A DNA stretch of 64,000 bases, from contig JAKMXF010000321.1 of NCBI GenBank assembly GCA_024704765.1, forward strand, positions 1,137,006 to 1,201,005, written 5' to 3'. The stretch comes from Oopsacas minuta (taxonomy: Eukaryota > Animalia > Porifera). The position numbers and the translations under genes were made by a program. The notes below the pieces were generated by a model. That model had not been told where the DNA came from and did not search any database. It saw nothing but the letters and a program-made list of their open reading frames with translations. Position 1 is the first letter of the stretch; each line of letters starts with the position of its first letter. Positions 16,692 to 54,597 of the stretch are shown piece by piece.

Positions 16692-18074
16692 ATTTATCTA
16701 TTGCACATTTTAATGTATATACGTATTGTCAATTTTATCATTTACATAATGATTTTCTGGTGTTATTCCTTGATATATTTCAGATTTTTGCCGGAATGAA
16801 TATTACAGGTATCCTTCATCCTCGATTTAAGGGATAGATTATTCTTTGGAAATACCGTGTAAAACGAATTTTAGTCGATCACCAAATTAATGATCACGAT
16901 TTCAATCGTTCAAGAAGAATGATCGGAGATCGTGATTCCGATCCTTGCACCGAAAAGGGTAGCGATCACAATCACGATTTCCGATCACATTTCTGAAATT
17001 TATAAGCACCCCATATAGAGAGATGCTCTATTACCTGCTGCAGTCCACCCGTTCGGGTGGCCATGCGAAATCTACCAGTCTGATTGCCATGAAAATTCAG
17101 TTTCAAATTCTGTCTGCCCAAAAAGATCGAAAATATGATCCAATAATTTTCAGGATAAAATGATCGCGATCTTACACTCGATTACTGTTTATAAAATGAC
17201 CGGCGATCATCCTCCGATCGACAAAAACAGATTGCGATCGCACGATACTAATGCCCTAACTACAAGTGATAGAACCTTTGCGTAAGAGTCAGCCAAAAGT
17301 CCAATCAGCACACATCTTCGTGGTCGAAGGTTCGCCTTTGTGATCCGAAACCCGACGTTTAGGGAGGTGAACAAACAGCAGTTATAGTACGGACTGCTAA
17401 CAACATCCTAGACCTGAGAGAGAAGAAACATTCCTCGGCTGGCACGCCATTACCCGAAAATGTGCCGGGTCACTGGTTACTCTGATAGAAGACATTCTTC
17501 GTATATATGGATATAGAAAATAACTGTGTTGGTCAGGTTCTAGATGGCGCTGCAGCAGTGAGGGAGGGCTAAGTGGAGTGAAAACGAGGATAATATCTAT
17601 GCATCCTCAGGATTTGTTCATCTATTGTGTAGGTCACGCACAATATTTGGTCCTCAAGCAAGGCGATATAGTAGTACCCGCTTGCGAACACGAAATGTCT
17701 GTAGAGAAAATCATGTTAAGCGTACTTCAGCCTGGAAGGCTGAACATCAACGGAGAAGTGATGAGAGAACAAGTGATCAGGGAAAGGATAACGACGAAGG
17801 AGACTCTGACAGCTAGGAAGAGTAGTGGATTGGTTTGTACGTGGAAAATATTGGCAAAGAAAAAGAAACTGTGATGTTACTCAGTGATCGAGATGGTTGT
17901 GCAACTAAGGGGTCGTTTCAAGATTTTAAACAATTATTCTTCACTGTTGGATTACTTTACACAGTCATTAAAAGTGGACGAATAGTCAAGTGTTAAGAAT
18001 TCTTATCTAGCTAAAGCTAGAGAGTTTGTCAACCTACTAGATAACTACTGCACGTATTACAGCTTACGTGTATT

Positions 18075-18847
18075 CATAGACTACTATATAATACAGATAG
18101 GAAAGTAGTCGAGGAACGAATAAAAACGAAAGGCCATTTATATAAATCTCATAAAAGTTAAATTAACCCTTCAAAATTTGTGAATTGAACTTTTTTAAGG
18201 TTAGAAAATGTAACTAATCAGTTAAGACTACCTAAAGTTCAAGCGGCCATCTTTCATCTCGTTTAGGCGCATTCAATTCACGACATTAAAATTCACACAA
18301 ATGCTCATCAAAATAGAATTTTTTACTTTATGAAATTCTTGTATTTCAATGAATTAATGTCCTCTATTTATTCATACGGTATATAAAATTAGCCGTTTTC
18401 TTTAGAATATTTGTATCACATCTTAATAGCCTATTTTTGAAAATTCATAAATGTATTTTTGATAAATATATTATTTTATGTCACATGAAATAATTGCAAT
18501 AAGCAATACTTAAAACATAGATTTAACTTGAGTGTGAATTACTTGTACGAATTCTAACAATATTAGCATAAAGTTAAATACAATACATTTTTTACAAAAA
18601 TATTTGAGAAAATGTTCAAATTATATAAATGCTAACGTCATCGCATAAATTGCGCCTAAACGAGATGAAAGATGGCCGTTTGAACCTTTTAGGTAGTCTT
18701 AACTCATTCTTCACATTTTCTAACCCTAAAAAAGTTCAATTCACAAATTTTGAAGGATTAATTTAACTTTTATGAGATTTATATAAATGGCCTCTTTTGT
18801 ACTCGTTCCTCGGCTACTTTCCTATCTGTATTATATAGTAGTATATG
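18075..18847 (+). mobile_element. Fold-back non-autonomous DNA transposon (P/Galileo-like), copy 1, 773 bp
   Basis: ~195-bp TIRs beginning CATAGACTACTATATAATACAG / CATATACTACTATATAATACAG; perfect 7-bp TSD GTGTATT at 18068-18074 and 18848-18854. Confidence 0.85.
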
Positions 18848-20519
18848 GTGTATTGCAGGATGCGTACTCTATTATTAACCTGTACATCGTATCATTCAAT
18901 CTCCTACCTTGACCGGGATCATATAAGGACTACTCATGATCGGATGAGTCCGAAAGCTAAAGATTGGATCGCATAAACAGCATTCTACAAGAAAGTGATA
19001 ACAGAAGCTGATGAAATAGGCTTATAGGGTCTTATTCTTGAGCGTGCCTCCGGGCGGGGGAGAAAGAGTAAATTTATGGCTGCTTTAGAAGAGGATCAGC
19101 TTCTGCTCGTGCAACATGCTCCACCAATTCATAGGTCTATCCTGCTCGAACTGGTTGTGATTCGAGGAGGAAGTATGACTCCGCTGACATAACTATTGTA
19201 GGTACATGGAGAAGCTATGTTCAAATCTGAGCGCGATATACAGATACTATGTGGTTGCTTTAATAATATCGCATGGAAAGGATTTTATCAGTACTGCTCA
19301 GTTGAAAATAATTCGTTCAGATTGGCGAAATGCACTGAAACAATACTATAGGATCTATGATCCTTTTTTAGCGCAGCTCCTATGCCCTAAGCATAGGGAC
19401 GTACGTCAGATGCCACATATCCTAAGTACGTCCACGCGGCCGTGCGAAATCTGACATTCCGATTCACATGAAAATTGTTATCGCACATATATTCATTTTG
19501 GGTCGGCGATTTCCACTTTGGGCATTTATTTTTTCCAAAGTATAATTTTCACACCTTTCTCTATATTAAATTCAAAAGCATATTAGAGATTAGGTTAAAT
19601 ATGTCATAGATAATTGGGTGTGTAGAGTCCGATTTGAGATTTTCCGAGTCTGAAAGTTACAAATTCACAGTTTTATCATATGATTAATCATATTTTCACA
19701 CCTTTTTGCACATATTTTGAAAGATCCTGGAGATTTCCTTTCTACTGTTAGTCAGGGGTAATTGTGAGTTTAGATTCCAATTGTATCTTTTCAAATCTAC
19801 GTATACTCAAATTATTTATCATAAGCCGAATTGCCCCTTGTATGCAGCTGGTAGCAGCAAAATCTATTAATATTTCCAAGGCCATTTTGAATATTTGGTG
19901 TATTTTAGGATTTTTCTTAAGTAACATGGTTAATGCAGGGTTGGTGTAAAATACATTAAGATGTATTTAAATACATACAAAAAACATTTCTAAATGTATT
20001 TTATGGAACACAATTACTTTGTAAATGATCACCAAAGTATTTAAATACTTTTAAAATACTTTCCGACAATATTTCAACACTTCACAAATCTTCCTTAACA
20101 GTATAGATTATCTATTATACTAAGGAACATGGATCTATTAATTAACATTAACAATAGTCTCTCGTTAATACGAACACTTGGATAAGACGAACACATTTTG
20201 ACGGTCCCCTGGTGTTGTCTGTTCGCACACTTTCAAAAGAGCTTCTCTTGCATTTCGTTTATTCATTCTGGCCATCTTTGAGGTTTGGAAATTATGTCAA
20301 ATTAAATCTATTTATTTGTATATGCGAAATTAAGTCCTATTTATTTCAAAGTACGAACGAAGATTCTGAGGTGATATGCCAGCATAAGCGCTAAATTTGA
20401 ATTGTCAACTGCTGGTAATTGTAGACCTTTGTTGTTCGCATACTGATTATTTTCCACAAACTATTTGTATTAATTTATTCATATCAATATGGTCTTTGAA
20501 ATATGATCTTTGAGACTTT

Positions 20520-21000
20520 TCTACTAATCTTGTGAAAAAATTCCTCTTCATCCTCTAATTTGAATTATCACCTGCTTGGGCATATAGTCTCGCTCTTTCA
20601 TCGCAATCCGTATTTCCTCAGTTAACCAATCTGGAACAGTAGAATATTCTACTCCTTTTTCCTGCCAGGCGTGTGAGTCTAAGACATCTATTAGGAGCTC
20701 AATACACGAAAACCTCCTGTATACAACCTCAATTATGTTTGTTTCATCTCGACATTTAAACTTCAGTATTTCGTCAAATATAAATAGTAACACCACCGTG
20801 ATTCATTCCATTTGATCTATCTTTCCTCAATAATTTGTACCCTGGAACATTAAATTCATTATTTGTATGAGTAGGAGCTAACCACGTCTTGGACTTACAA
20901 AAATTGTCGCATTCTTTATTGGTTAGTAGAATAAGAACATCACAATCTTATCAGCAAGGCTTCAAATATTCCAATGAGAAATCTTTAAACCCTTCGGTAG
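20520..21000 (-). mobile_element. Degraded non-LTR (CR1/L2-like) retrotransposon ORF2 fragment
   Basis: Minus strand gives GLKISHWNI*SLADKI..ILLTNKECDNFCKSKTWL (start of an APE endonuclease) and PDWLTEEIRIAMKERD (pre-RT PW-like motif). Boundaries approximate. Confidence 0.55.
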
Positions 21001-22079
21001 GCCAAAGCCAGAGGAGACAGACCAGATTGTAAACCCATAATCTAATAGCTCCTTAGTTTGTTTTATGAAGTTTTGAAATTGTATGTATATGTAAAGCCTT
21101 TTTATGAAAATGGCAATTGGAAATTAACAATATTTGACAATGCAATGGAATTTATTAACTTTTGTAATACAAATTTGTTCAAAAAGTTTTGAACAGCCCC
21201 TTGTAGTTTTAAATATGTATACTGATATTCGCATGAGCCAATACATTTCATAGGACTACAGATTTTTTAGATGAGCCTTGTAATGATATATCCCTGTGTA
21301 AATGTGGCCTGCATGTTGCAAAAGTTTACGAACCCCTGACATAGAGCATAAACTTATATGCAAGAATATCATATATCAACATACAATATCTGATTTCTAT
21401 GGTTTAGCTCCACTGTAGGTTATCTATATTTCTAATATGAAATTAATATTCTGTAATCTTACGATATCTTATTTGTGTGATTTGACTTTATATGTCTATC
21501 TGATTATAGTTATAATAGCAAGTATGTATATAAGAAATCAGTAAAATTATTCAGTCTCATTATTCAACAACATTTGATTGCTAAATTATAATGTTTTCAA
21601 CTCGACTCGGAAATATATCCTTCAATATCAATTGTAAGTTGAAAACTTTCCTATAATTCGCTCTTTTCATTACATCCATGCTGATCGTCCGGCCCGCCAG
21701 GTCTAACACTCAGACTCGAACCTTCTCACTTTAGATACTTTCTAGTGATTCTAAGTATGAATCCTATTATAGGTCAAACCTAGATTATCCGAATTCAATT
21801 TGATCATTGAATTGAAGTGATCGTAATATTTTCCCATCTAATATATTTGATATTTACCACTTCTTATTTTGCCTTAAACAAGCTAAAATCTATTCAAATA
21901 TCTTCTGTGACCCCCACAATATAATTTTTGTGCATTTTATTATCCAAACCAAGTATATGAACAAATTTAGTCTAAAAATTGATGAACTCTTCTTATGCAT
22001 CAAAAATTGACTTGGAGGTCATCAAAAACATCTATGGTCAAAGCTCCAAGAGGGTTGTCGGGCTCCAGGGCAACAGTCT

Positions 22080-22170
22080 TATTGGGCTGGACGATGTGCG
22101 ACGTCCGAGGTCCGTTCATCCCTCCGCGCGGACTTGCGAAATCTAGCAGTCCAATCAACATGAAAATTGG

Positions 22171-22210
<40 letters not shown>

Positions 22211-22270
22211 GTCGGAGATTTGCACCTCTAGTATGAATTTGCCTACCTGAAAGTAGCAATACATGTTCGT
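22080..22270 (+). repeat. Family A HINE-like partial copy containing an expanded (AT)~16 tract
   Basis: GGACGATGTGCGACGTCCG..AAATCTAGCAGTCCAAT matches the copy at 15931; (AT)n at 22176-22207 replaces ATACATATACAT of the other copies. Confidence 0.7.
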
Positions 22271-23786
22271 ATTTGAGTTAAAATTGTATTTGAAATTTAT
22301 TGTTGATATTTGTCATTGGGCTAATTCATGGGTATATTTTTCAAAAAATGGAAAAAATCCATGAATTTGCCTATTCTCAGTGACAAATATCAACTAACCA
22401 TTTCAAATAAATTTTAATAAAATGAAAATAAAATTTTGGCAAATTTCTATGGAAATTAATGAAACAAAGTCCCTATTAGGAGGCTTTGAAGTAAATCGTG
22501 CAAGGGCCAATTCATTTTAAATTTCTTTGGAAAAACATAGTTTCGTTTACGTCAAAAAGGTGCTAAAATCTCGTGTTTGGGGCGGGAATTGGTTAAAACG
22601 AAGTGGTAAAATTTCGCTATATAGAATATGAATTAACAATATTATTTTTGATCCCCCTATCCCCCTATCGACGCCCCTGCATATGGAGCTGCGAAACGTT
22701 TCTCATTTACAGTAGCCTAATTTGAATTATCTAAAAAATGTATATTGATTATCTGATTGAGACATAAGGGTTCGTTCGCTTTGTGACGAGGGTCTACATT
22801 CATGGAATGAAAATGTTAGCAGTTCCATCTTTAAGAGTAAATGGTATGTGAAATTATGACACCAATTCTCGATGTCTCTGTACCGTACAACATAGAACAT
22901 TACATCAACCATTCTCATACTTGTCAACGAGCTTCCTCCCTCTCAGTTTGAATTTCTATCAAACTTAGAGGGGGCAAGCTCTCTCATTTGAAAAAGAGCC
23001 TAGCATGGCCGCAGTCTCTCTTTTTTATTAACATGCATTGGGGCTAAAATGCCCAATGCATGTTATACAAATATCGATATCGGGGAAATCTCCTAATAGA
23101 TACGATATATCGAGAAAATGTAAAGCGATATTTGAAATATCCGAAATCTTTTGATTGTTTCGATATTTTTCAACCCAGTATATCGATGTCAATCCTTGAC
23201 CTACGTATTTTCCTATCATTTATGTTTGTAGATGATCTTATTGCAATTTGGTCATAAATTTTCACTCATTTTCCTTTTGACCCCTATATTGTTCCATTCA
23301 CCTCATTTTGTGTCATTATCAAGGTTACAGAATAGTGCTTAGAGAAATCGTATCAAAATGTATTACACGGGTATAGGAAGTTGGGCATGTAGTTCATATT
23401 GTCTTGAATGATTTTTGGCTAAAACTCTCGCAATAATCGAGTTATAAGTGGATATTGGCCAAAAATGTGCCATACATAACATTTGATATAACTCAATAAC
23501 GTGTCAACTTTATTATTACAAAATTTTATATTTTATGTGTAAACATCCTTAAATCACTTTATTTTAATTCTGGAATTGAAGAAGCACTAGTGATCGTTTA
23601 TCAGAGCTTTAGAAAGGGGAATATTTTTAACAATATATCAAATGAAACCCTACGAGTAGTCTAATAAATCTATTCTAACCAGTGCGAACTTCGAATTTCT
23701 GACTTGTGTAACTACCCCATAGCACTAGGATGCTGGTTAGAAGACCCTGTGATTTATGAATATGAATTGTTATTGTATAATTTAAT

Positions 23787-24104
23787 ATGACTCATAAAAT
23801 ATTCAGAAATCATAGTAAACCTTTCACTAAAACTCTCAAAAGATCATATTATACTACATCCATGACAGATAGTTTGGACTTACAACCACTTACCAGTACC
23901 ATTGACGTAGGGGTAAATGAGCCCCAGACAAATCTGGACCTTCCTTCCATTTGTCTATGCATTGTGAATGACGAAGCAGCTAATCTAACTGATCAGCTAG
24001 TAATATACAATGAATCTTTGGGGGCTGCTACTGAAGATCATTTGCTCAAAGTAAAGCCAATTGAAGGGGGCGATGTAATTGAAGTGAAGAAACAGCATAC
24101 AAAG
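23787..24104 (+). CDS. TRPA1-like: TRPA-like channel, putative coding exon 1
   Basis: Open frame ending in donor AAG|GTATAT (phase 0). No homology motif, so supported by splice-phase fit only. Confidence 0.55.
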
Positions 24105-27100
24105 GTATATTTTTATAATTAAACATTGATACATTATTTTCATTTTGACACACTTTAGCCTATCAATTGGGAAACTTATCAATATTGAAAACGGAAATAC
24201 AAATTTTCAAATTTTTCCGACGTCACTTTACGTACGTACAAATATTTAATGAAAACATGGTAAATTTGACGGTACAACGCGATATATAATCTTCTGGGGC
24301 TATGAAATTAACCCAAATGTACATCTGTAGCTCCAGAACTGACCAAGTTAAGATGGTTATTTTTGAAGAACAATTTGACTTGTGGCTTTAACGTCATAAC
24401 TCCGTAAGTTTTGGAGCTACAGATTAAGTCGATAGCTGTTCTATATTGGATTCTCTATTCTAGAGTTACTTTAGCTTAACTCCCATCGACGACACGGTTT
24501 TTTGTCCACCGATTACCACATGCTATTTGCAGATTTTTCCAGTGAATATGATAAATTTTATCTGTTTAATAACACTGTACAACAAATTTCAATTTGGAAA
24601 CAAAACGAGAATCTGATTAGGTCGCTATAGTCAATTAGGATCTCCTGATTCCGAATATCAATACAGTTACTCAAACACGCAACAATTTTATAGAATTCAA
24701 CATGCAAAATGGGAAATTACAACAAATTACAAAATTATATATCAAAATATCATCTAGTCATGTAAAACCTGTGAAGATTATTAAACTACTTCGTATTTAG
24801 AGCATATATATACCAGAACGAGCTAGTATAGGAAAAAATTGGTCATTTTACTAACGAAATCTAAATCACACATACAAAAAATGAAAAAATTACACAATAT
24901 CGTAAAATACAATACAAATAAAAGGTTTAGCCAATTCAGAGCTATTTCTTGGAATAAATGAATTCAACATAACCGCGAATTTTAATCCTCAAAGGTTTTA
25001 CATAACTAGTTGATATTTAAGGAGAAACCTTTTGGTAATATATGACATTTTCTCAATTTGTGAGTTGAATTCTATAAAATTGTTGCGTGATTGAGTAAAA
25101 CTGTATTCATATTCGGAATCAGGAGATCCCAATTAACTATAGCGACCTAATCGGGTTCTCGTTTGTTCCCAAAATGACAATTTATTGTACAGTGTAATGA
25201 ATTAATTCCACTCTGTGCACTATTCACAAATATGCTGTCACTAATTGATCAACTGCTTACTATTCTAGATTCTACAAAATCCTGAAAAGAGTGAATCGGA
25301 TGTTGACATGTAAGTTTCCTCCTACCTTTTATCCATTATTTGGAAATGTCCAGTTTCTCCCTATTTTACCTTGGCAATGTTTCAATAAATTTATATTATC
25401 TTGGCATCTTCGCAAAGTGGTCGCAGACATTTGGGATGGGTCCGCAATCAGCGACTTACCATATGGTCAGTCGCTTATTGTGTATCCCGACAGTAGCAAA
25501 ATTATTTTTATAATATATATATACTTCATATTTAGCTAAGTCTATATACAAGTACGAGACCTATATAATAATTTATAGGGAAACCAGACTGGTTCATAAT
25601 AGGAGAATGTTCAGGCTATACATGTTTACATAATGCCACCACAAAATTTAGTTGTGGCTAACCAACGAATTTCATTATTATTTACCGATACAATATTGTA
25701 AGGCGTACCATATACTACTATATAATACAGATAGGAAAGTAGCCGAGGAACGAATAAAAAAGAGAGGCCATTTATATAAATCTCATAAAAGTTAAATTAA
25801 TCCTTCAAAATTTGTGAATTGAACTTTTTTAAGGTTAGAAAATGTGAAGAATGAGTTAAGACTACCTAAAAGGTTCAAACGGCCATCTTTCATCTCGTTT
25901 AGGCGCAATTTATGCGATGACGTTAGCATTTATATAATTTGAACATTTTCTCAAATATTTTGCTAAAAAATGTATTGTATTTAACTTTATGCTAATATTG
26001 TTAGAATTCGTACAAGTAATTCACACTCAAGTTAAATCTATGTTTTAAGTATTGCTTATTGCAATTATTTCATGTGACATAAAATAATATATTTATCAAA
26101 AATACATTTATGAATTTTCAAAAATAAGCTATTAAGATGTGATCCAAATTATATTCTAAAGAAAACGGCTAATTATATATACCGTATGAATAAATAGAGG
26201 ACATTAATTCATTGAAATACAAGAATTTCATAAAGTAAAAAATTCTATTTTGATGAGCATTTGTGTGAATTTTAATGTCGTGAATTGAATGCGCCTAAAC
26301 GAGATAAAAGATGGCCGCTTGAACTTTAGGTAGTCTTAACTGATTAGTTACATTTTCTAACCCTAAAAAAGTTCAATTCACAAATTTTGAAGGGTTAATT
26401 TAACTTTTATGAGATATATATAAATGGCCTCTCTTTTTTATTAGTTCCTCGACTACTTTCCTATCTGTATTATATAGTAGTCTATGGGCGTATTAAATAT
26501 TTGAGGGGTGCGCACCCACACACCCCCCGGAGAATCCGTGCCTGGTAAAAAGGTGTGAATGTATGATTTATCATGTGATAAATCATGTAGATATTGGTTG
26601 GAAAATTGAAATCTACACACTCGATTACCATGACTAGTTTGTGAAACGAAATCTCTAGCATCATTTGAATAATATACAAAAAGTTGTGATATATGTAGTG
26701 GAACCGCACAAAGTGGAGTTTTTGTCAGAATTGGGTTTAGGTTGAGCCGTAGGCAATTTTGAATGAAATTGTATACAATAATTCAAGGAGAAATTCCCGA
26801 AGTAGGGTTAAATCGCATTAAACCTGCCGCTCTAAGACTTTTTAAGGTAAGGTACCTCATAAAATGGTTGAAGGAAGGATCTGTAATGAAGACAGCCAAG
26901 TGAATCTCCAAAAGTATTTTATATCTCATAACTGGGGTAAATATACTATGAAAATCCCAGGAGTAGGTCATGCGCCATGGGTCATAAGTCATAGCCCATC
27001 AATACTTTGATTCAATAATAATGTAGATCTATGTAAAAGAGACCAAGAGATCAATTTACCAGACCTGTAATAAGTGGTCTTTTCACTGGCTATTTTGAAG

Positions 27101-30100
27101 GCTAAGTCCGAGTCAACATTGCTAGACTCTGCAGTGCTAGAATTCTCCAACTAAATTTCATGAATGTGTGAGATGAAATTATCATTACATTATATATAAT
27201 TATAATTGGTCAGACCGTATTTAAATGTGGTACGGTGGGGAGCACCAGTTTTCGACAATGGTCCTACGACTCTGCACTTCTTTCATTAGTTTATTTGTTA
27301 AGCAGGAATAATACTTTACAAATTGTCAATAATGTGTATAGACAGTATATATAACTGTAGATATAAATATAATTAACTAATTGTAGAATTTCGAGAAGAT
27401 AAGGATGTTATTACATAACTAGAAATCCGGAAAGTGGTACGGCGCTTGCCGACCAGTCCTGCGGGATATACCGCCCCAGACTTTAGTAAATTTACCAAAA
27501 GTTCAAACTTTTGAAAATTCTTCGGTCAAAAAATCTATATATCCAAATATACGAAGAGTTTGTTCCGTGAATCCGATTTCCAATTATCAAGTTTGATACT
27601 TTACTGACAGACATCCTAACAATCCTAAAACTCCGTGTTTGAAGTATTAGTAGTCTGGTTTCCTGATCTCAACCAATTCTATTTGAAGGAATGGTTTTCC
27701 TAAATTGTATTACGATATCGGGGTTTCTGGCAAATTTTCGTACGCTTAGGGAATAATAATAAAATTTATGGGCCTATATTCGCGCCGCATACTCTTGGAT
27801 AATATCCTGCTAGCTGCTTCAGCTCCCCCTAGTCCCCCTAAATTCGTCCCTGATTTAAAATCCATCCTCAAGTCTTGTGATGTATTCTCCTCAATATTTT
27901 GAACAAACTTATTAAAATCAATATTATTTATAGATTCAAACATGTGCATGATCTCGTTAAAGTTCAGGAACCAGATGCACTCAGGTTGGCTATTTCTCAA
28001 GGTGTTTTGAGCACTGACACCGAGTTATCACAATCTGACGGAGACTCTCTACTACATTATGCTTCAAGGGTCGGGTCTGCTGAGTGTTTAAAATATTTAT
28101 TATTTGAAGCAATAACTGTGTTCCCGTTTAACTCGTTAAATGATGAAGGATTTAACATCCTTCACTCCGCAGTGGAAGGAGGTAAAATTGAAAATATCGA
28201 TCTCCTTTTAAACTTTTTGTTAAAGTCAGAAGATGAAGCGTCTAGTGACTTACTTAAGAGTCATGAAGACTTTTTGAACGCTAAGACAACAACAGGTTAC
28301 CTTACATTCCTTATTTGTATCATATTTATTATACTTGTACAAGTTTGGTTGCGCCGCGACTTCTATGTGCCCTGAAAGTTGTAATATCTATTTCAATGAA
28401 GACTTTATGATACGTATTATACGTTTAGCGACTTTAGTCTAATTTTGGGGACGCAACTTCTAATAGGCTGATTTAGGTAATTTATTATTTTACACGATTC
28501 GTTACTTTTCGAATTGTTTATGAGATATATGAACATAATTGAGGAATTTATACAATATTTGATCATTATGAGATCTATACAAGTTCTAACATTGCCAACT
28601 TCTCCTATTTCGAGATTGAATTAGTCCTTGGTTTGGAATTCTTGGAAACATCCAGATTTGTCTGAAGATGAAAATTTGCTAGGTTTTCTGTATTTTTACA
28701 TTATTGTGTGTGTATTGTGTACTAACTCGTGTTTTTATTAGGGAACACTGCTCTCCATCTCTGCTCTATATTTTCTAAGAGAGATGCAATACGTCCATTA
28801 TTAAAGGCTGGTGTTCACCTGAGTGAAGTAGATAACAACCAAAACACTCTCCTACATCTTGCTGCCGAGAAATCGCTTATCGAATTTTTCAAAAGAATCG
28901 CTAACTATCATATAACAGATAGAGGAGACAAAAGTGAAGCTCTTAGTAAGTTTGCCATACATTGCACACTTCATATTTCAGATATCTCTAATCTCTTTAT
29001 ATTTAATTATAAATCATTATTAAATGATTTTCTAGTTTTAGTTGTTATTAGTAAGTAATTATTACCCCGATTAACGCGTTGCTTGTGATAGCTATATAGC
29101 AGGTTTTTGGAAGCGCTTGGTTCAATTCCGCAACGCTGCACTGCTCAGTAATTATTTCGACTATCAAATTGAAATTGGAATTTTGCGTTCATGAAAACTA
29201 TATCGATAGCGGTCATTATTTTTGCTACGTCGTTTCGCGACTTGGGGCGAAACTCAATTAACTAGAATATGTTGTCTTTTCGCGGTTTGGACTGTCTTCT
29301 ATTTTGTGAATGTAAATCTTTGCGATTTCTGTCCACAAAATGAAGCATATTTAATGGTTCTATTTATTAGGTTAACAAAATGTATTAAATGTCTAACAGA
29401 TTTGCCTCTATCAAAAGTAATTAAAAGTCTACCAAAATTGATGAAATGTCTAAAAAAACTGATCAAAAGTCTAACAATTTGTATATATACTCTAAGCTAA
29501 GTAGCTATTTAATTAAATATGGAGTTAGAATATAAATCTCTCTACTTAAATTATATACAGTAGGCAATCCCAAAACCGAGGCACACCTCTCAGATTTTGA
29601 GTTTTAGCCTACTTATACGGTACTTTAGTTCATTTTCCTTAATTTTTTGCATATCTTATATCATCATCCGATATTGGTTAGATCTTCCAACTTCCTCCAT
29701 CCACCATGCCTTACATACTAAATGTAGGTATGTGGCAGTTACCATTTATCAGATTAATTCGGACAAACAGACAACCAACATAGTTTTATAGTACGTATAG
29801 TTGTATTGTTTTCATGCGAACTCTAAGCAGGGATTCCATTCTGGACACAAAAAAGGCGTGCAAATATTATTTGCAACGGTTTACTTGCTACTTTATTTTC
29901 CTCCTTTTCTTATAGCATTATATTTACTCATTCTCTTTTTACTTGCTTCCCTGTTTTGCCATGCTATTTGGGTCGAGGTTGGGTGATTCCCACAAGAGTG
30001 GTGCGGCTTATTGTTACAGGAGGTGATTCTTAAGCTGTAGTTTGTCGACTCGTATTGAAGTGTGCAGGGGCGTGCCAGTTATGTAAACTGACCAGGTCAA

Positions 30101-33100
30101 ACATGTTAAAGCTGTGGTATTACTAGCGCGCTACGTTTTCTAGGTCGCTGCCCGACGAGCCGTCACATACTCAGTAGTTTCCACAGATGTTGCTTAAGTT
30201 TCAAACGGCTAAATTTCTAGTGCTTTGGTAGCTACGCGATGGAATATACTCGACACTACATGCTTCAAATTTACAAACATTTGTGAATGTATATTATCTA
30301 TGGTATGGTCATCCAAATTACATTCAATAGTTTCTGTGGTTATAAATCACGGATGTACGGGCATTGTACATCGTCCATGCCTTTAGGGTATCCCCTAAGG
30401 AGCAGCACTTAAAATTTAATGGGTAGTTATCCATTTTACTTTATTTAGAGGAGCTAAAAGAGTGTTTTCTGCTTCAAAATAAAGACAAGAAGATTCCTGT
30501 CTTACTAACAGATGATAGGGCTACCATAGATATTATTTTAAAATATTCCAACGTTGATGCTGTAGTTGATAAAGAACTTGGTAGACTCATCCATATATCA
30601 GCAGCAGAAGATAATCTCATATTAGCAGAGGCTCTGATTGATAAAAAGATCGATCTAAATATACCAAATAGCAAAGGCTTCTCGCCACTTAAGATAGCAG
30701 CAAAGAGAGGAAATGTAATAGTTTTAGAGGCATTGCTCAAAGCTAAGGCTAACCCTAATTATATTGGTAAAAAGCTGCCTGGATTTTCTCCTTTGAATAA
30801 TGCAGCTCAATTTGGTCAAATGGGTTGTGTGAAATTGTTGATTAAACACGGAGCTGATCTTGTCCACAAAGACATGACCAATACAATTATACATTCTGCA
30901 GCTTATGGCGGCCATGCTAAAGTTGTAGAGTACTTGCTTAAAGAAGTAGGAATGGATGTTAATCAGAAGAATAATGCCAACAGAACACCTCTCTACCAAA
31001 GCATAACTCAAGGTCACAACTCAGTTGCAAAGACTTTATTACATCATGGAGCTGACCCTAATGTATTGTTGGGAAAAGATAGCGAAACACTTTTACACGT
31101 AGCTATTAGAGAGGGTAGAAAGGATATCGTCAGGATGTTGCTTGATGCCAAAGCTAAACCTGACGAGCCTCTTAAGAATGGTGTGACACCTCTCATGCTA
31201 GCTGCAGAGAGGGACTTTGCTGACTACATACCTCTTATCATGGCTCATGGAATAACACTTGCGAAGAAGGATGGAGAAGGGAATACCGTACTTCATCATA
31301 TTGCAAAGCATAATTCTTGCGCTTCTGCTAGGTATATATTGAGGAGGATAGGTTTGATGAAAGGAATATCTCAAGAATTTCAATTGTACAAAAATGGCAA
31401 CAATACCAAGCAAACGCCATACGATGTAGCATTAGAATCTAGGAATGAACCTGTATTGAAGATATTCATTGGTTATGCACCGAAAGATTATTTTCGAAAT
31501 AATCCTAAACAGATTCACAATTATTTTGACTCTAAACTATACGATACACTTAAGGAGGTGATAAACAGATCAGTAACCGTGAATGAAAATAAAGGTAAGT
31601 TATTGATTAGATTATTTGATTTATGGCTGAGGTTGAGAATCGTATACTCAATCGGCAATCGCGTATTAGCAAGGCTATACTTATTATATCGTGAAATTGC
31701 GTACACAAACATAACGGTTTGAACTGTAAATCCCAGGCACAAAGTGCGGTGTATACTGCCGTCTGCAGCGACAACCAAGTGAAAACAAATGGAACGGTGA
31801 ATATTTATTCGTTTTAGTCATGAATACACAATATACGTGTTCATTATGTGCATTTTTCGCTGTAAATTGATTATTTTAGCCATTTGCTTACACAAGGAAG
31901 AAGACAATTACCTATTTCTTTACAATACATACGTTCGAGGACTAAAATCTAATAATTTAATTAACCTGGTGCATGGCCTACTAAAAGACGGCTATACATG
32001 CTGCCGAATTATAGTAAAAATAAGAGTCCAGTAGTATAATTCTCATAAGAGAAAAATTAGGCCTCCAGTGTTTGCAATTAAGACTACTTAAAAAGTAAAA
32101 ACGGCTACCCTCCATCAAGTTTATGCGCAATTATGCATTGACGTCATCATTTATACATCTTGAATACTTTTTTTAACAGAAAAAATAAGATTCCAAATTG
32201 ATGCTGAAAATTGGATATATTTTTTATACTTCACAATCAAGAGAAATATATGTAGAACGATAAAAAAATTGCTCTTTAGTATTATTATTAAGATATCTCG
32301 ATTAATTGGGAACTCCGCTTAATAGGGACAAAAGGACTTGAACTGATGTGTCCGATTAAGCGGAGTTGACTGTAATTCACAAATAGATTGTTGATAAATC
32401 TATAATGTTAAGTCCAAGGTATATATTGTGATTCTTTCAGTCGCAGAGTCCCCTAAAGTTAATTAACCACTTTATGGTTGAGCCAAACCCATCCAATGTA
32501 CAAACTCTACAAATTTCGGATCGTTTAGTGCCATCCGTGTATCATGTTGATAACAATGACTGGTAAATAGAATTTGATTTGGCCAAATTCATCCCAAATT
32601 TAGTCTATATCTATCCTAATTTTGTACATGTACGTAACGTATTGGAATTTCCTAACTCAAGAGAAATTTCTTCTTGATTGAGTTACTAATTTCCACTCGA
32701 TTACCAGAGTTGGTCCCGATTAACAGAAAATATTCAGTATTAACTTTAATGGAGATGATTCTGTTCCTGTAGATTTGTACCAATTATGCGGATTTCGCGA
32801 TTAACCGGTCTCCCAATTAAGCGGAGTTGACTGTAATCGAAAAAATATATGAAAATGGTGTAAAAAATTGATTTTACAGCTAATTTGATGAATATTTATG
32901 CAGTATGGATGAATAGGAGATTTTCCTAGGAAAGATGAAATTTACAAAATTCCAAAATTCAATTTTAGATTAGTAAATTTTTACATTATGATGTCATGAT
33001 TTGAATGAGCCTAAACGAGATAAAGGATGTCCGTTTGCACTTTTTAAGAGTCTTGATTGATTCCTTGAATTTTGGGAGAAATTGAACGCCCAAAATTGTT

Positions 33101-36100
33101 CAATTCGCAAGTATCGGAGGCCTAATTTTCTTTATGAGAATTATAAAACTTGACTCTTACTTTTTGCTATGATTCGATAGCATCTATAGGTGTATTTTAG
33201 TAGCCCATTCCCGGTGTCAATTTTACCCGATTTCAAATGTAACTTAAGTCTGAAACAGCTAAATTTCTTAGTGCTCTTGGTGGCTACGCGATCGAGCGAC
33301 AGGGTGTTACTCATCACTACATTCCTCGAAAAAATAATGACCAGCAGACAGACTGGTAGTGCAGCTCAGGGTTATGTGTTTTTGTTCTTTTCAGGGAGTG
33401 CACCCCATGACCCTCCCGTCTACATGGCGCATTTCACCAGATCCCGACTGATTTTGGGCTCCTAGATCAGGAAATTTCAGGATATTCAATATTATTTATC
33501 CAAATCTTATGGATAAAATTCTAAAATATTTTCCTTCAATTAGCCCCTGTCTCACAGTCTGGTAAAATTGCGATTATGGTGTAATATGTACTTACACTGA
33601 AGATATATGTTAAAATGTTGTCATATATAATAAATCGACTCTGTAGATTTCAAAAATGGCAACAGATTTTAGTTACACTTCTGGAAATGGGACTATAACG
33701 TAATCTGTGGTATTTTGATTTAATTCATAATTATGGTTCAAGATAAATATAAATGTGTTCTAAATTTTTGAGTGTTATATATCAGCCAGCCCTATTTATT
33801 AATAAACTTGAATAACAATTCGTATACTGCATTCCATTCTGCATTGGATACTTCATAAAATGATACTAGTGAATTAGAATACAGTAATTATAAAATATTA
33901 TAACGAAAATTGGAAATTTCTAAAATACATTTCATCCGACTCGGTGTGCCCCATACACTTAATGTCAAGAAAATTATAAGTGGGCGCCTTTGGGCGGGTC
34001 TAGAAATTATTGAAAATGAAATTTAGAAAGATATACTATGCGAAATTATCGACTATTCAACTCGCAATTATTTGCATTGTAAGATCGGGGACCTAAATTG
34101 TAGGTCAACGAGCTGAAATATGCATAATAATAGACGGATAAAAATGCTTGAGAATGAATAAATAAAAATATAATTTGTTTTGCAAAACGAGTAAAATTAA
34201 TCACATAATACATACGAATACTGATAAATACCATTGAATAACGAAAATCCAGGAATGCTGTAATATCGCAAGGATATTTGAAGAATAAATATTTGTGGTT
34301 TTCAGGTATTTCAAATTTCACGTTTTAGCCTAAGTTTTATACTTTGGTCAGACACGCTATAAGTTCATTAAGTAACTAATAATAGCATTTTTCTAGGTTG
34401 AAATAGTGTAGAATCGAATTCACACATTAATTTTGATAAATAGCGCAGTCAAATTTGCACCTATTACCGCATAATTCTACACTATGTGTCTGACTTTTGG
34501 AACCAGACATTTGGCATCAATTTGAAATATGTGCAAAAGGTGTAAAAATATGATTTATCGTGTGATAAATCATGTAGATATAGATTTGAAAGCGCGAAAT
34601 TTGGAGTCTACATACTCGATTACCCCTCACTTGCAGTTAAAAGGAAATCTCTAGCATCATTTGAATTTTACATTTTTTCCAATTTATCTCGTGAATTGGA
34701 CTTCTAGATTTCGCACAACCTCGCGGACGGAATTACGCAAGTCGCACATCGTCCATGCCATTATGGCATCTCCCTATAGAAGCTGTACTAAAAATAGCTG
34801 AAATTGTATGAATTTATTGTCCATGGACCATTATCCATCCGAATTACTCTTATGGCTTCCTATGTTGACCCTGGAGCTTCTAACATAGCTTTATCTCCAG
34901 TATCATCACAGAAGCCCATTGAATGTAATTTGGATGGACCATGGATAATAAAATATTAGTCTTTTCACTATTCTGTGAATTCGAGGCACTTAGATCCGAG
35001 TATATTATTTCGCGTAGCGATCAATAACACTATAAAATTGCAGTAGTCACCATCTAACACAGTAATGATTCGCAAATGCTTTGGGTTGCTCAGCATTCAG
35101 TCCCTTCTAAATGATAACATTTCCAGTTGTAGTAAACCGACTATTCATCTCTTCCAGTATAGTATCAATAAACTGGTAGAAATACCTAGAAATAGTTATG
35201 GTTTCGCTTGGCATTCTATCTTCCAAGATCGTTGCCTCAGTTACAGACATTTTGGGGGTTTCTAGGACGAGGTTTTTCATCAACATGGGAGGTTTGCTTT
35301 CGAAGCTCGACAATTTCAATCCAAAGGAAATGGTAATCTTGCAGGGTCTTCAGTGCCACGTACTAACAGAATGACAGAAGCCTCAGAGTTTCAGCCGTTA
35401 AGGATTTTGATAAAATATGAGCTCAAAGAATCTTGATCCGAATTTTTTGCAGCTATCTACCAAAAGTAAATTTATGTGGAAAGCAGAGTATCTGACGTTA
35501 GAAATTCTTCAGTAACTCCACTAGTTTCGCTATCTTCAAGCCAATATCGAACACAAATGCTTAGTTGTTTATGTTTGATGGGTATCTTGTCTCATCAACA
35601 ATTTGGGACCAATACTTGACCAGAGTTATTTCAACTTAATTTGTATCTGTACTAACATGACCATAACGTTCAAGATTTCGTTCTGAATTCGAGGTGATGG
35701 TTTTGAGAGTTTTCGCTGGACGTGACTTCCTCAAATTCTCTTGGATTCAACAAGATCCAAGAGCGAGAGAAGTTTCCCTTGTTTTCTGAAGTCTCTGACA
35801 CGTCATTCCCTATTTATGAAATTCGCTGGACTGCATCCCATCTCAAAATAACAATTGCCACATTGAACCAATCCCTGTTTGTAGCAACCAACTGTCTTCT
35901 TCCAGTATCAAGTTGAGCCTATATGTCTTTTTCAATCGTTTCAAAAAATCATTCCATCTAGCAAGTGTAAACGTTGTAAACGTTTCTTACTCAATAGAGA
36001 TAAGTAAGATAACTCATTATGTATTTCAGTTTCAAGTATGCTCAGTAGCGGATTAACCATGGTGCCAAAAGAGTCTTGGCACCCAGCCTCGACTTTTAAC

Positions 36101-39100
36101 CGGCCTCGCGGTCTTAGCATATATGGATGAAATTTTCCTGTTTGTTAATAGGACATTCTTATTTAGATTTCGGATTTACCTCAAAAATTATAAATTTCTT
36201 AATTTTCTATGCCTAGAGACCCTAGTCTATATGTATATACATAGCCTACTAAATATAAGGCCTAACAGTAAAAGTACCAGGGATGAAGTATTAGCTGAAA
36301 GCATTTATCTACACGGTTCCTTTATTGCAGAAAAATGCATTTTTGGCTGAATAAATGTATTACATTTTTGTAGAACATCAAACTTTACACAAATAAATGG
36401 TAAAAACTTTTAGGAATGTGTAAAAATATGTCTCTAGCAAGTATTTATTTAGCAAAATATTTTATTCTTTGATGCCTTGTAGAACGTTAAATATTGCATT
36501 TATCAACTCAAAGTGAATAAATGAAATGATCTATAGATCCTTTTATACAAAATGTCAAAAATTTGTCATTCAAAAGTTGGCTCGTTGTTGAGTTAAGGTA
36601 GAGACCATGGATGACAAGTTTTTATGAATATTCAATTATAACTCGAGAATCATTAAAATTATCGTAAAATCAGGATAGGCAATTTATACTATTTACCCAA
36701 CTTCCCATACCTTTGCAATACATTTTGATATGAAATAATTGAAGAGTATTGCAGAATATTGAAAATGACCATATATGGGCATCGTCACATTGGTGAGAGA
36801 TATCATATCAAAATGTATTGCAAAGGTATGGGAAGTTGGGTAAATAGTATAAATTGCCTATCCTGATTTTACGATAATTTTAATGATTCTCGAGTTATAA
36901 TTGAATATTCATAAAAACTTGTCATCCATGGTCTCTACCTTAACTCAACAACGAGCCAACTTTTGAATGACAAATTTTTGACATTTTGTATAAAAGGATC
37001 TATAGATCATTTCATTTATTCACTTTGAGTTGATAAATGCAATATTTAACGTTCTACAAGGCATCAAAGAATAAAATATTTTGCTAAATAAATACTTGCT
37101 AGAGACATATTTTTACACATTCCTAAAAGTTTTTACCATTTATTTGTGTAAAGTTTGATGTTCTACAAAAATGTAATACATTTATTCAGCCAAAAATGCA
37201 TTTTTCTGCAATAAAGGAACCGTGTAGATAAATGCTTTCAGCTAATACTTCATCCCTGGTACTTTTACTGTTAGGCCTTATATTTAGTAGGCTATGGTAT
37301 ATACTATACATATATATATTATACTTAGTTTATTAATTGGACAGTTATCTTACTTTCTTCTCATATCCTAAGACATTTAGCATCAGTGGCGTAGCACTGC
37401 TTCAAAAAGTGGTCCGGCTAGAAATAGAAACAAACCTTGGATGTATGGTCCAATAAATGTACACTAAAAGCATTGAGAAGTAATTAATGAAAATATAAAG
37501 TAGTCTCATAGTAGAAACACTAGATTACATGTCCTGTTTTGAAAACGTACCAAAAACCGTCATTCGGTATTCAGTGCTCGAAATTGATTGACCATAAATG
37601 GAAATATATAACGATTAACATCTTAGAAAACTATTTACATACTTTGGATACGATAGTGCGAAGTAATAATTCATCAAAACATGAAAAGTCATGGTCTGCT
37701 AAAAACCGGCCAGTAAATTCTACCCAAAAAGGGTCTGGTTTTGTGCCGGACCTACTCCTATACCTATGAGCATATACATATCAATGCGAAAATTCAAGGG
37801 AGGTGCTGAAAAAGAAAGCTTTCTTTATTAGTGTTAATTTTTCTGAATTATATTTGATTATGATGACTGTTTTTAATGAATGGAGGCTAAAAATAACAGC
37901 CTCACAATCCTACTGGCCGCCCGGCCTCACAGGCCCTTAATCCGCCCCTGCGTATGCTATAGCGAATTCAAGATTTTAGTGGATAAACTGTGATCGTCCG
38001 AATCAGTTCGTCATAAGATTGTTCCATTGTAAGTAGTTTCTCATCAATTCCCAATCAGAATATTGTACAAAGTCTTGATCGTGAGGGCTAGTCATAACGC
38101 TTCTACCTTGTGATTTCATTCTCTAAATCAAAATATTGATGTTAAGGGATGAAAAATACTTAAATTTTCAATGTCCCCAACTATAATTTTCCCTAATCAT
38201 ATACCTAATGACAAATGGAGTGTCCCGGCCTCCTGAATATACCCTATACTAACCTTTACAAAGATATTATAAATTGTACGTAGATTAGCAAACATTAGCA
38301 ATCAGTTATTTGACCTAATTCTATTATTAATTTAGGAGAAGTTTCTGCACAAACTAGTTTCTTCGATTCAAATGACAGTGGACAATACCCAGACGATCCT
38401 AAATTCAAACCTCTAAAAGAATCATTATTACATAAATTGATAGATTGTCAAGATCAAGAATTGAAGTACCATCCTCTAGTCAGTATAATTGTAGACAAGA
38501 AGTTACGCTTCTACCGCTGGTGGTATGTAATTTCATTCTTTTTCTACCTTTTTTTCCTTATTTGCCTAGCTTACGCACTAGTTCAAGCTTCTACCGTGTG
38601 TGACTCAAATATTTGGCTTTATCAGAACCCAGCAGACTGGGTTAGGGGAGGTTGCGAAATAATTTGTCTGCTTTATTTTATTTTCTTCTTATTTAACGAA
38701 GCAGTGGAATTTATTATAGAATGGACACAGATATACGAAGAAAACAAAGATAAATGTGAAGAAAGTCAATTAACTATAAAATATATTAGCGATGCAACAA
38801 GTGGCGGAGACAAAACATGTCTATCTATATTCTTCGTACAATGGAAAAATATCCTTGGTCTCTTTCATAAATTAGATGTAAAGCTGAAATATTTTTTCAG
38901 TGCATTCCCGGAGTATTTTGATGGTGTTTATAACTTTATCGATTGGTTAGGAATTGTTTCTTTCATCGTCTTAATTTTCCTGAGAGCAACTAGCGTCTAT
39001 ATACAGTGGTCGTTTGCTGGACTCACTTTTATCTTTTTCAGCCTTTCGCTCTTCAAATATACTCGTATATCTCCAGCATTAGGTGCATACGTGAGTGGCG

Positions 39101-52423: not shown

Positions 52424-52950
52424 ATGCCCAATATATGCTCCAATAGCAAAAGCGATTATTAGGGTGAAGGTTATACACCTGTTTTTTTGCCCAAGTCTCC
52501 AGGTATAGTGGACAATGGCGACAAGCTATTTGTAGAGAAGGAGCTTTGGAATTGAAGTCAATATATGTGTGTATCAAGCATTTTCGTAAGGAAGATATAC
52601 TACGAGCATTTTAAATTCATTAAATGGACGGCTCTATGCCACTTTTGAACGTTCGAAGCCCAAACTTTTAGAAACTACCCATCCCTTGTATCCTACCTGG
52701 TTGTCCGGCATACCTATCTTCCACCTGCTAACAAACCTGCCCGCCTCACGAATGAGTCTAAGGAACAAGAATCGTTTGATCAAGCATTGAGACTTAGCTT
52801 TGCCACCGACTTGTTGCAGAAGACAAATTCACACTTCATCACTTTACAGACCTGCTGAAAAAGCTTCCTTCATGTCTTTACCTGACAATTGCATTCAATG
52901 GCATACTCTTCACTTAATGTTACAGTGAAATCAATTGATACAACGGGATC
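52424..52950 (+). pseudogene. THAP-domain (P-element-type transposase N-terminus) remnant
   Basis: MPNIC..(stop, frameshift)..VFLPK..QWRQAICRE..YVCIKHFRKEDI, then ILPGCPAYLS: a C2CH THAP signature with lesions. End approximate. Confidence 0.6.
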
Positions 52951-53528: not shown

Positions 53529-53779
53529 GGATAGCACATGTATCCTCTTATAACTCGATAATCGTGCATTTTATAATACCATTTTATAGTATACACCCAA
53601 CTTCCCATACCCTTGCAATACTTTTTGATAAAATATCTCTCAAGATTATTGCGGAATCTCTTAATTGACCATTTATGGGCATATTTATGATTACGCCATA
53701 TAGGTAAGAGATATCATATGACCATTATGTCCACGATTATCGAGTTATAAATGGATATTGGTAAAACATGTGCTATCCA
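53529..53779. repeat. Diverged core of a relative of the 36240 fold-back
   Basis: Shares CCCAACTTCCCATACC.TTGCAATAC and GACCAT.TATGGGCAT with the 36.7-kb centre; inverted TTATAACTCGATAATCGTG at 53548-53566 and 53732-53750. Another relative lies at ~23340-23560. Confidence 0.65.
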
Positions 53780-54597
53780 TGGTATATGCTATAAGAAAAA
53801 AGCCAGCTTTATCATGACAAATTTTTATATTTTGTACAGGAACGGTTCTAGATCATTTGGAATTTTAACATTTTGAACAGATTAATACTTAACTTTCCAC
53901 ATGGTTTCAAAGATGGAACATGTGTTAATACATATTTGCCAATTATGCTAGTAGATGACGTCACTTCGATCTGTAAATCTTCACAAATGTGGCTTTTGTG
54001 AATTCTTGCATATCAATAATACATTTATTCGAGTGAAAATTACCAGTTTCTAATTATCTGCCGTTATAGAATTTCCCATCAAAATATAGCCTCTTCCTTT
54101 TATCCCTGGCCCAGTGAAAATGGGCTCAGTGATCAGGCTTTATCTTAATTATAGTTCCACATTATAGCAAAATCCATGAAATACACACCTTTAGGGTTAG
54201 TACTGTACGAATGTGTCTAATGAATATATAATCTGTGTGATCCTTGTTGTGACGAAATTATAAAATTTTGCAACTTTACATATTCATTAGAAAATATCCA
54301 AATACTTTATGAAACATTTTTAACATTTCTAAGGAAACGTAGGGTTATAAGGAGATTATCTTAGCAAGGCACATATGAAGGGTATAGATCCGTATTGTAC
54401 AGGTTACCTATATAGTTCAGACCCTAAGCTATTTAGTTTGTGCTGTGGTACACTAAGGAATATATAATATGTAATATTTCAAATATTTGTAGGTACTATA
54501 CAGCTATACAATAGTCAGTACTAATGACTTTGACCTACAGTATCTATCTGGTTTATATTAGTAATTCTATATCATAATAGTATTTGTAGATTGTATA

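Follow-up and report, generated by a model that had tools for sequence, protein, structure and literature searches.

P elements make target-site duplications (TSDs) of 8 bp, and those of the related elements Galileo and 1360 are 7 bp long (PMC3698922). Trichomonas, dipterans, Ciona, and other taxa also have P-like elements, and BuT5 is a miniature inverted-repeat transposable element (MITE) that is mobilised by a P element (PMC3698922). Within Galileo, the terminal 40 bp are conserved between subfamilies and a THAP site is located about 70 bp from the end (PMC3688188). In the literature we found no description of P elements or their MITEs in sponges, a search that did not extend to Repbase and Dfam. 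Here we analyse four elements, E1 to E4, that are located in a window of 64,000 nucleotides (C321:1137006-1201005) of the genome of the glass sponge Oopsacas minuta. We consider it very likely that E1-E4 belong, as non-autonomous members, to the P superfamily of cut-and-paste DNA transposons, namely as MITEs with long inverted repeats that fall into two groups and are moved in trans by a P-type transposase. The elements had been noticed in a reading of the letters of the window alone (the original prediction), which rightly took the host to be probably non-bilaterian. Its statement that Galileo is known mainly from Drosophila would be too narrow for P-like elements, which have been reported from Trichomonas, Ciona, and other taxa. 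The assembly that we searched has a size of 61,460,524 bases and consists of 365 contigs, in agreement with the ~61 Mb and 365 scaffolds of the published genome (PMC10280926).

All four elements share ends of the type CAT(A/G)(G/T)(A/C)CTACTA, long inverted repeats, and a 7-bp TSD (Table 1). An inverted-repeat scan recovered each of them where the original prediction had placed it, and the ends and duplications were read directly. According to the Repbase classification the ends of P superfamily elements are of the CANRG type, and CATAG, CATGG, or CATAT is present at every readable end of E1-E4 and also at the ends of two of the autonomous P lineages described below, alpha and beta. Allowing one mismatch, the terminal 14-mer CATRKMCTACTAWA occurs eight times in the window compared to 0.6 expected, a number that was reached in none of 100 shuffles. 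In the genome, the exact 14-mer is found 356 times compared to 23 times for the reversed control. At a length of 7 bp the flanks match in seven of seven positions for E1 and E4 and in six of seven for E2 and E3. In E1, the two flanks are identical at k=7 and differ in 5-9 positions at k=6 and k=8-10.

The same length prevails beyond the window. We compared flank repeats of k=5-10 in 18 non-autonomous copies of families A, B, and C together with their flanks. At k=7, there are no mismatches in 8 of the 18 copies, one in 5, and two in 3, and all other lengths resulted in 1-10 mismatches, mostly 4-8. Therefore, 7 bp is the sole TSD length that fits in 16 of the 18 copies, and the tabulation of TSDs has turned out as the original prediction had anticipated. 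The ten family A copies, which are 82-87% alike, include nine with 0-2 mismatches at 7 bp and one with 4 mismatches. Family B has perfect 7-bp duplications in six of its seven full copies, the flanks of the seventh (L003) being unrelated. An obvious consensus of the duplicated 7-mers was not found in this small sample of copies. P superfamily elements have TSDs of 7-8 bp, and we found 7 bp in the non-autonomous copies and 7 or 8 bp in the autonomous elements. E1-E4 are non-coding, so that their assignment depends on ends and TSDs, and a coincidental resemblance of some other cut-and-paste superfamily (hAT, Dada, MULE, or similar) to P elements has to be considered. hAT elements also have ends of the C/TA..G type and have been annotated at 2.69% of the Oopsacas genome (RepeatMasker table of the genome paper). 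However, the 8-bp duplication of hAT elements is seen in none of the family A, B, and C copies, which all have 4-8 mismatches at k=8, and this genome contains autonomous P elements that likewise start with CATAG and have a 7-bp TSD. In addition, the pairs of family B ends described below enclose P-type and not hAT-type sequence. Another superfamily is thus very improbable, and the membership of E1-E4 in the P superfamily, as originally predicted, agrees with 7-bp TSDs throughout the genome, CATRG ends, and the presence of P-type autonomous elements.

P-type transposase sequence is abundant in the genome. The Pfam profile PF21787, which describes the N-terminal part of the P-type RNase H domain, has at least 92 matches over its cut-off in the genome, many of them in open frames of 500-950 residues. 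The profile PF21789 has a single marginal match in the genome, and PF12017 (Tnp_P_element) has none, though its control likewise gave none. Frames of 771-952 residues encode the N-terminal part of a TNP-like RNase H domain together with a GTP-binding insertion domain, and the two longest, of 879 and 952 residues, contain a THAP domain as well. In a phmmer search against PDB structures, the 952-residue protein matched the Drosophila P transposase structure 6p5a over about 400 residues (E 5.5e-10). The motifs AFDEM, VSDLGTGN, and VEHFFG of the sponge protein align to D, D, and E of 6p5a, which we take to be the catalytic triad. In their THAP domain, RNase H-like DDE domain, and GTP-binding insertion, in the match to 6p5a, and in having ends of the CATG/CATAG type, the sponge elements resemble the Drosophila melanogaster P element and human THAP9. 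They differ from the P element, which has 8-bp TSDs and 31-bp repeats, and the sequence similarity is remote.

The autonomous elements that we read as DNA belong to three lineages, alpha, beta, and gamma (Table 1). The transposases of alpha and gamma are 42-45% identical, and that of beta is about 24% identical to both. Because autonomous alpha elements combine CATAG ends with 7-bp TSDs, bona fide P elements of this type are present in the same genome. The THAP part of alpha is an upstream exon, with a stop before the 807-residue frame in the copy L044 and open in L046 and L047. Near-identical gamma copies with CGTGACC ends (L043 and L041 versus L042, L045, and L049) give TSDs of both 7 bp (three) and 8 bp (two). 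The data show that P-type transposons are diverse in this glass sponge, with at least four lineages, and judging by intact frames, identical repeats, and perfect TSDs some of them were probably active recently. Alpha and gamma (L044, L043) have an in-register block in common, TTTTGGACCATGGAT, at positions 41-55 from both ends, which is a candidate transposase-binding site.

Because E1, E2, and E3 are related inside and E4 shares only the first ~14 bp with them, its interior being unrelated, the elements form two groups, A (E1, E2, and the diverged E3) and B (E4). The original prediction had assumed several fold-back subfamilies with differing interiors. This holds for the interior of E4, but E2 is an inverted copy of E1 with 98% identity and E3 is a relative of both at 70-78%, and two groups remain. 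As is typical for MITEs, the elements are short (0.77-1.24 kb) and multi-copy, have inverted repeats and a TSD, and contain no P-type coding match.

Copies of both families were counted by their terminal 24-mers (with up to three mismatches for family B), each with a control. For family A there are 64 occurrences in the genome compared to one in the control, corresponding to about 32 copies. E1 ends with CATAGACTACTA and, on the reverse complement, with CATATACTACTA. Its inverted repeats of ~197 bp (18075-18271 and 18651-18847) are 92% identical and surround a unique core of ~380 bp; the arm segments found in the inverted-repeat scan comprise 55, 106, and 38 nucleotides at 91-95% identity in E1 and 163 and 38 nucleotides at 92-94% in E2. 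E1 and E2 are located 7.6 kb apart in opposite orientation, and the next closest copy in the genome is 87% identical. Given that the rest of the family reaches at most this value, such a close, inverted, and highly similar pair could be the product of an inverted segmental duplication instead of transposition. However, the similarity stops exactly at the ends of the elements, and each element has its own TSD (GTGTATT and GGCGTAC/T) in unrelated flanks. Therefore, E1 and E2 are separate insertions, and a duplication of the segment is hardly credible. Their 98% similarity shows that family A moved fairly recently, over 7.6 kb. Local hopping is known for P elements, and the short distance would fit it. 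Family A would be an older family, of which E1 and E2 are a recent pair that probably goes back to a short-range jump.

E3 is an old relative, whose identity to E1 and E2 covers the arms but only part of the core. Its left end is CATGGCCTACTA, the right end has decayed to ...CCCATT, and the arm segments comprise 62 and 33 nucleotides at 76-88% identity. We saw just three other copies of the outer part of E3 in the genome. Dozens of further matches cover only positions ~289-865 of the element, corresponding to an unrelated small multi-copy repeat that is nested in E3. This repeat has direct and inverted 25-mers at 32352-32376 and 32813-32837: CCGATTAAGCGGAGTTGACTGTAAT is directly repeated at 32352 and 32813, and the inverted AACTCCGCTTAAT is located near the left edge.

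The family B element E4 is an almost complete palindrome. Its arms (36240-36736 and 36800-37296) have 497 nucleotides each, are 100% complementary, and are separated by a loop of 63 nucleotides (36737-36799); both ends read CATAGCCTACTAAATATAAGGCCT. The terminal 24-mer is found 259 times in the genome and not at all in the control. There are more than 100 ends of the family B type, and over 20 loci have the fold-back architecture. Of seven copies, four have two arms that are 100, 99, 98.5, and 98% identical to each other, and between copies the identity of arms does not exceed 97%. Based on informative sites there are two ancestral arm types. Three copies retain one arm of each type, three further copies are homogenised inside so that both types survive only in the outer ~45 bp, and E4 is homogenised along the whole arms. 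Because the arms match better within than between copies and the types are kept only at the outer edge, the arms of family B have probably been converted within copies, and the conversion tracts look as if they were centred on the loop. Family B would be the younger of the two families.

The perfect palindrome of E4 might also be an artefact of assembly or polishing. The assembly was built from PacBio and Illumina data and polished with Pilon (PMC10280926), inverted repeats invite cross-mapping of short reads, and no other copy has arms that are 100% identical. However, three other copies have arms with 98-99% identity and copy-specific variants in both arms, which polishing could not create. 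The fold-back architecture is present at many loci, and the perfect 7-bp TSD of E4 marks a real insertion. An artefact is thus rather improbable, and we regard the arms of E4 as homogenised by conversion. It is tempting to speculate, although we consider this idea improbable, that in family B fold-backs one arm serves to rebuild its partner, through self-templated (hairpin-primed) repair or through conversion starting at the loop, that arm identity is renewed at or between transpositions, and that the fold-back habit of 7-bp P elements is ancient in animals. In that case, long-arm fold-backs of P elements with 7-bp TSDs would be no peculiarity of Drosophila. The homogenised arms constitute a small natural data set on the upkeep of long inverted repeats.

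In shape, the elements are indeed like Galileo, as originally predicted. Galileo also has 7-bp TSDs, long fold-back inverted repeats, and many non-coding copies with two terminal inverted repeats (PMC3573991, PMC3698922), and its arms are likewise 98-100% alike within copies (PMC3573991). The likeness does not extend further. Galileo repeats are internally repetitive and up to ~1.2 kb long, coding copies included, whereas the sponge arms (197-497 bp) lack tandem repeats and the repeats of the coding copies that we read have just 62-164 bp. Searches for tandem and direct repeats in the arms found nothing beyond two weak pairs. In addition, the host is a sponge and not a fly, and the likeness is one of shape. 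The near-palindromic structure with a short loop is also reminiscent of the Drosophila Foldback (FB) elements. FB elements have 9-bp TSDs, highly tandem-repetitive arms, and a connection to another type of transposase (MULE-like), and the sponge elements showed no such features.

In at least four places, exact or single-mismatch copies of the E4 24-mer form inverted pairs at distances of 2.7-3.4 kb with P-type transposase sequence between them; a fifth place has the same arrangement with a pair of 14-mers (Table 1). The RNase H region is located at a constant distance of 1.3-1.4 kb from one end in the full-length units. By their coordinates, the 3.4-kb units bounded by the 24-mer are the likely autonomous partners and mobilisers of family B. 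In searches with the alpha and beta proteins, in which part of the candidates were scored, the elements on contigs C111 and C73 were placed in neither lineage. The picture is the one expected for an autonomous family with a deletion-derived or end-mimicking fold-back. The relation proposed here also connects BuT5 to the P element in the Drosophila repleta group: BuT5 is non-coding, has a length of ~1 kb, and is similar only at the ends to a P element of ~3.4 kb, from which its transposase comes (PMC3698922). BuT5 differs in its 3-bp inverted repeats and TSDs of 8-9 bp from the sponge elements with repeats of 200-500 bp and 7-bp TSDs.

It was originally predicted that a single transposase lineage mobilised all of these elements. 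In favour of this, E1-E4 all have CAT(A/G)(G/T)(A/C)CTACTA in their first 12 bp and a 7-bp TSD, and alpha, gamma, and family B have an in-register ...TAAGGC... block at positions 17-23. However, the P lineages that coexist in the genome have distinct ends and transposases that are 24-45% identical, the two groups are alike over no more than ~14 bp, and 3.4-kb elements of their own are delimited by the 24-mer of family B, while that of family A bounds none with a transposase match. A common mobiliser is therefore unlikely. Long copies with P-type sequence between the same ends, which the original prediction had suggested looking for, are likely for family B, at the level of coordinates, and were not found for family A. 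Family A and lineage beta have only CATAGACT (8 nucleotides) in common.

Several observations weigh against E1-E4 as P elements moved in trans. Lineage gamma ends with CGTGACC and not with CANRG, and the end motif is therefore not universal among the P elements of this genome. A mobiliser of family A was not found: none of its 24-mer pairs encloses a transposase match, including the long inverted pairs on C44 (3.6 kb) and C77 (5.5 kb). The partners of family B are known by match coordinates only and were matched over the terminal 24 bp, and in blastn comparisons E1-E4 showed no similarity beyond the first 8-24 bp to the autonomous P loci that were read. Short-read polishing could partly account for the 100% identity of the E4 arms. 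In addition, the flanks do not match in the family B copy L003 (C365:1011622-1012687) and in the alpha copy at 4924-8697 of L047 (C25). Non-matching 7-bp flanks are the signature that has been described for chimeric Galileo copies made by ectopic recombination (PMC3573991).

Considering all of these data, we propose that a P-type transposase provided by autonomous elements elsewhere in the genome would recognise the CATRG...CTACTA ends in trans. The enzyme would bind DNA by a THAP domain and cut it by an RNase H-like DDE catalytic domain into which a GTP-binding domain is inserted, and its activity may depend on GTP. The element would be excised and reinserted with a 7-bp staggered cut, leading to the 7-bp TSD. 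In family B, conversion or self-templated repair may then keep the arms alike within each copy and have resulted in the perfect 497-bp palindrome of E4. The structures, 7-bp TSDs, copy numbers, P-type domains, and shared ends were observed; the pairing of transposases with families, the dependence on GTP, the local hopping of family A, and the mechanism of arm conversion are inferred.

The genome paper reported DNA transposons at 15.44% and unclassified repeats at 18.01% of the genome, and in its RepeatMasker table a collective class, 'Other (Mirage, P-element, Transib)', makes up 1.22% (PMC10280926). P-type sequence has therefore been detected automatically but left undescribed. Part of the 18% of 'unclassified' repeats in the only published Oopsacas genome can now be assigned to a superfamily, and one abundant fold-back family is linked to a likely autonomous P element. 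E1-E4 are an annotation within the known P superfamily, which is abundant in this genome, and no new kind of element. The P superfamily itself is well known and the understanding of how P elements work is unchanged, so that the elements should interest specialists in transposons to a moderate degree and will help to annotate the Oopsacas genome.

Table 1. Elements, related sequences, and neighbouring features of the window, followed by candidate and autonomous P elements elsewhere in the genome
Feature	Position	Strand	Length	Ends, repeats, TSD, and remarks	Basis
E1, family A, non-coding	18075-18847	+	773 bp	TSD GTGTATT (18068-18074 and 18848-18854), read directly	inverted-repeat scan, direct reading
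E2, family A	25709-26486	-	778 bp	inverted relative to E1; TSD GGCGTAC (25702-25708), GGCGTAT (26487-26493)	direct reading, genome search
E3, old diverged relative of family A	31972-33209	+		TSD CCTGGTG (31965-31971), CCCGGTG (33210-33216)	inverted-repeat scan, direct reading, comparison with E1/E2
Small multi-copy repeat nested in E3, unrelated	~32260-32837			approximate boundaries	genome search
E4, family B fold-back	36240-37296		1,057 bp	TSD GTATATA (36233-36239 and 37297-37303), read directly	inverted-repeat scan, direct reading
Decayed fragment related to inner family B arm	23341-23564			68-69% identical	local blastn
Second decayed fragment related to inner family B arm	53580-53913			fragments 68-87%	local blastn
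Lone family B-type end	56307-56320	-		CATAGCCTACTTAA	terminal-motif search
Unrelated fold-back	24566-25201		636 bp	arms 103+68+36 nucleotides at 81-89%; ends CACTGTACAA...; TAA on both flanks	
Host gene, ankyrin-repeat exons	27899-31722	+			open reading frames, Pfam
Host gene, ion-transport-domain exon	38437-39657	+			open reading frames, Pfam
Unit bounded by family B 24-mers	C332:1067818-1071214		3,397 bp	alpha-transposase matches at 40-44%, one in a 566-residue frame without stops	
Unit bounded by family B 24-mers	C326:7175-10577		3,403 bp	PF21787 and alpha-like matches	
Unit bounded by family B 24-mers	C327:298702-302080		3,379 bp	PF21787 match	
Unit bounded by family B 24-mers	C73:8084-10752		2,669 bp	PF21787 match	
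Same arrangement, 14-mer pair only	C111:1728651-1732408		3,758 bp		
Lineage alpha			3.8-3.9 kb	ends CATAGCATTCTA; repeats 71 bp; TSD 7 bp, ATCCATT and GTACAGC without mismatch in two copies, third non-matching	
Lineage beta			3.5 kb	ends CATAGACTCCTT; repeats 62 bp; TSD 8 bp	
Lineage gamma			3.6 kb	ends CGTGACCTACGT; repeats 164 bp; TSD 7 bp (three) and 8 bp (two)	

The elements are located in and near a host gene that encodes ankyrin repeats (Ank_2, E 4.8e-54) and an ion-transport domain (Ion_trans, E 5.5e-4, a match that does not reach the curated cut-off). The exons, read as separate exons and not as a spliced model, belong to one TRP-like channel gene. E3 and E4 lie between the ankyrin and the ion-transport exons and are therefore intronic, and they should be masked when modelling the gene. 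E2 and, at a greater distance, E1 are located upstream of the first ankyrin exon. A THAP-like coding stretch at 52510-52746 (+) is 42-43% identical to residues 36-112 of the gamma transposase and could be the remnant of a P element or part of a THAP gene of the host.

A further fold-back in the window (24566-25201) might have been a fifth member but is ruled out by its CACTG ends and TAA duplication. This fold-back looks like a MITE of the PIF/Harbinger type or similar and not of the P type. Because its ends and TSD are different, the features of E1-E4 are not generic to inverted repeats in this region. Elsewhere in the genome, an 863-bp fold-back at 8276-9138 of L046, with arms of 153 and 208 nucleotides, abuts the right end of an alpha element, and its ends, GTACAG..., overlap the TSD of this element. 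On contig C122 (552830-597562) there are at least seven CATGGCCTACTATA ends within 45 kb, among them one inverted pair that is 3.0 kb apart and has no transposase match inside. This cluster suggests that the end motif is shared by another abundant family.

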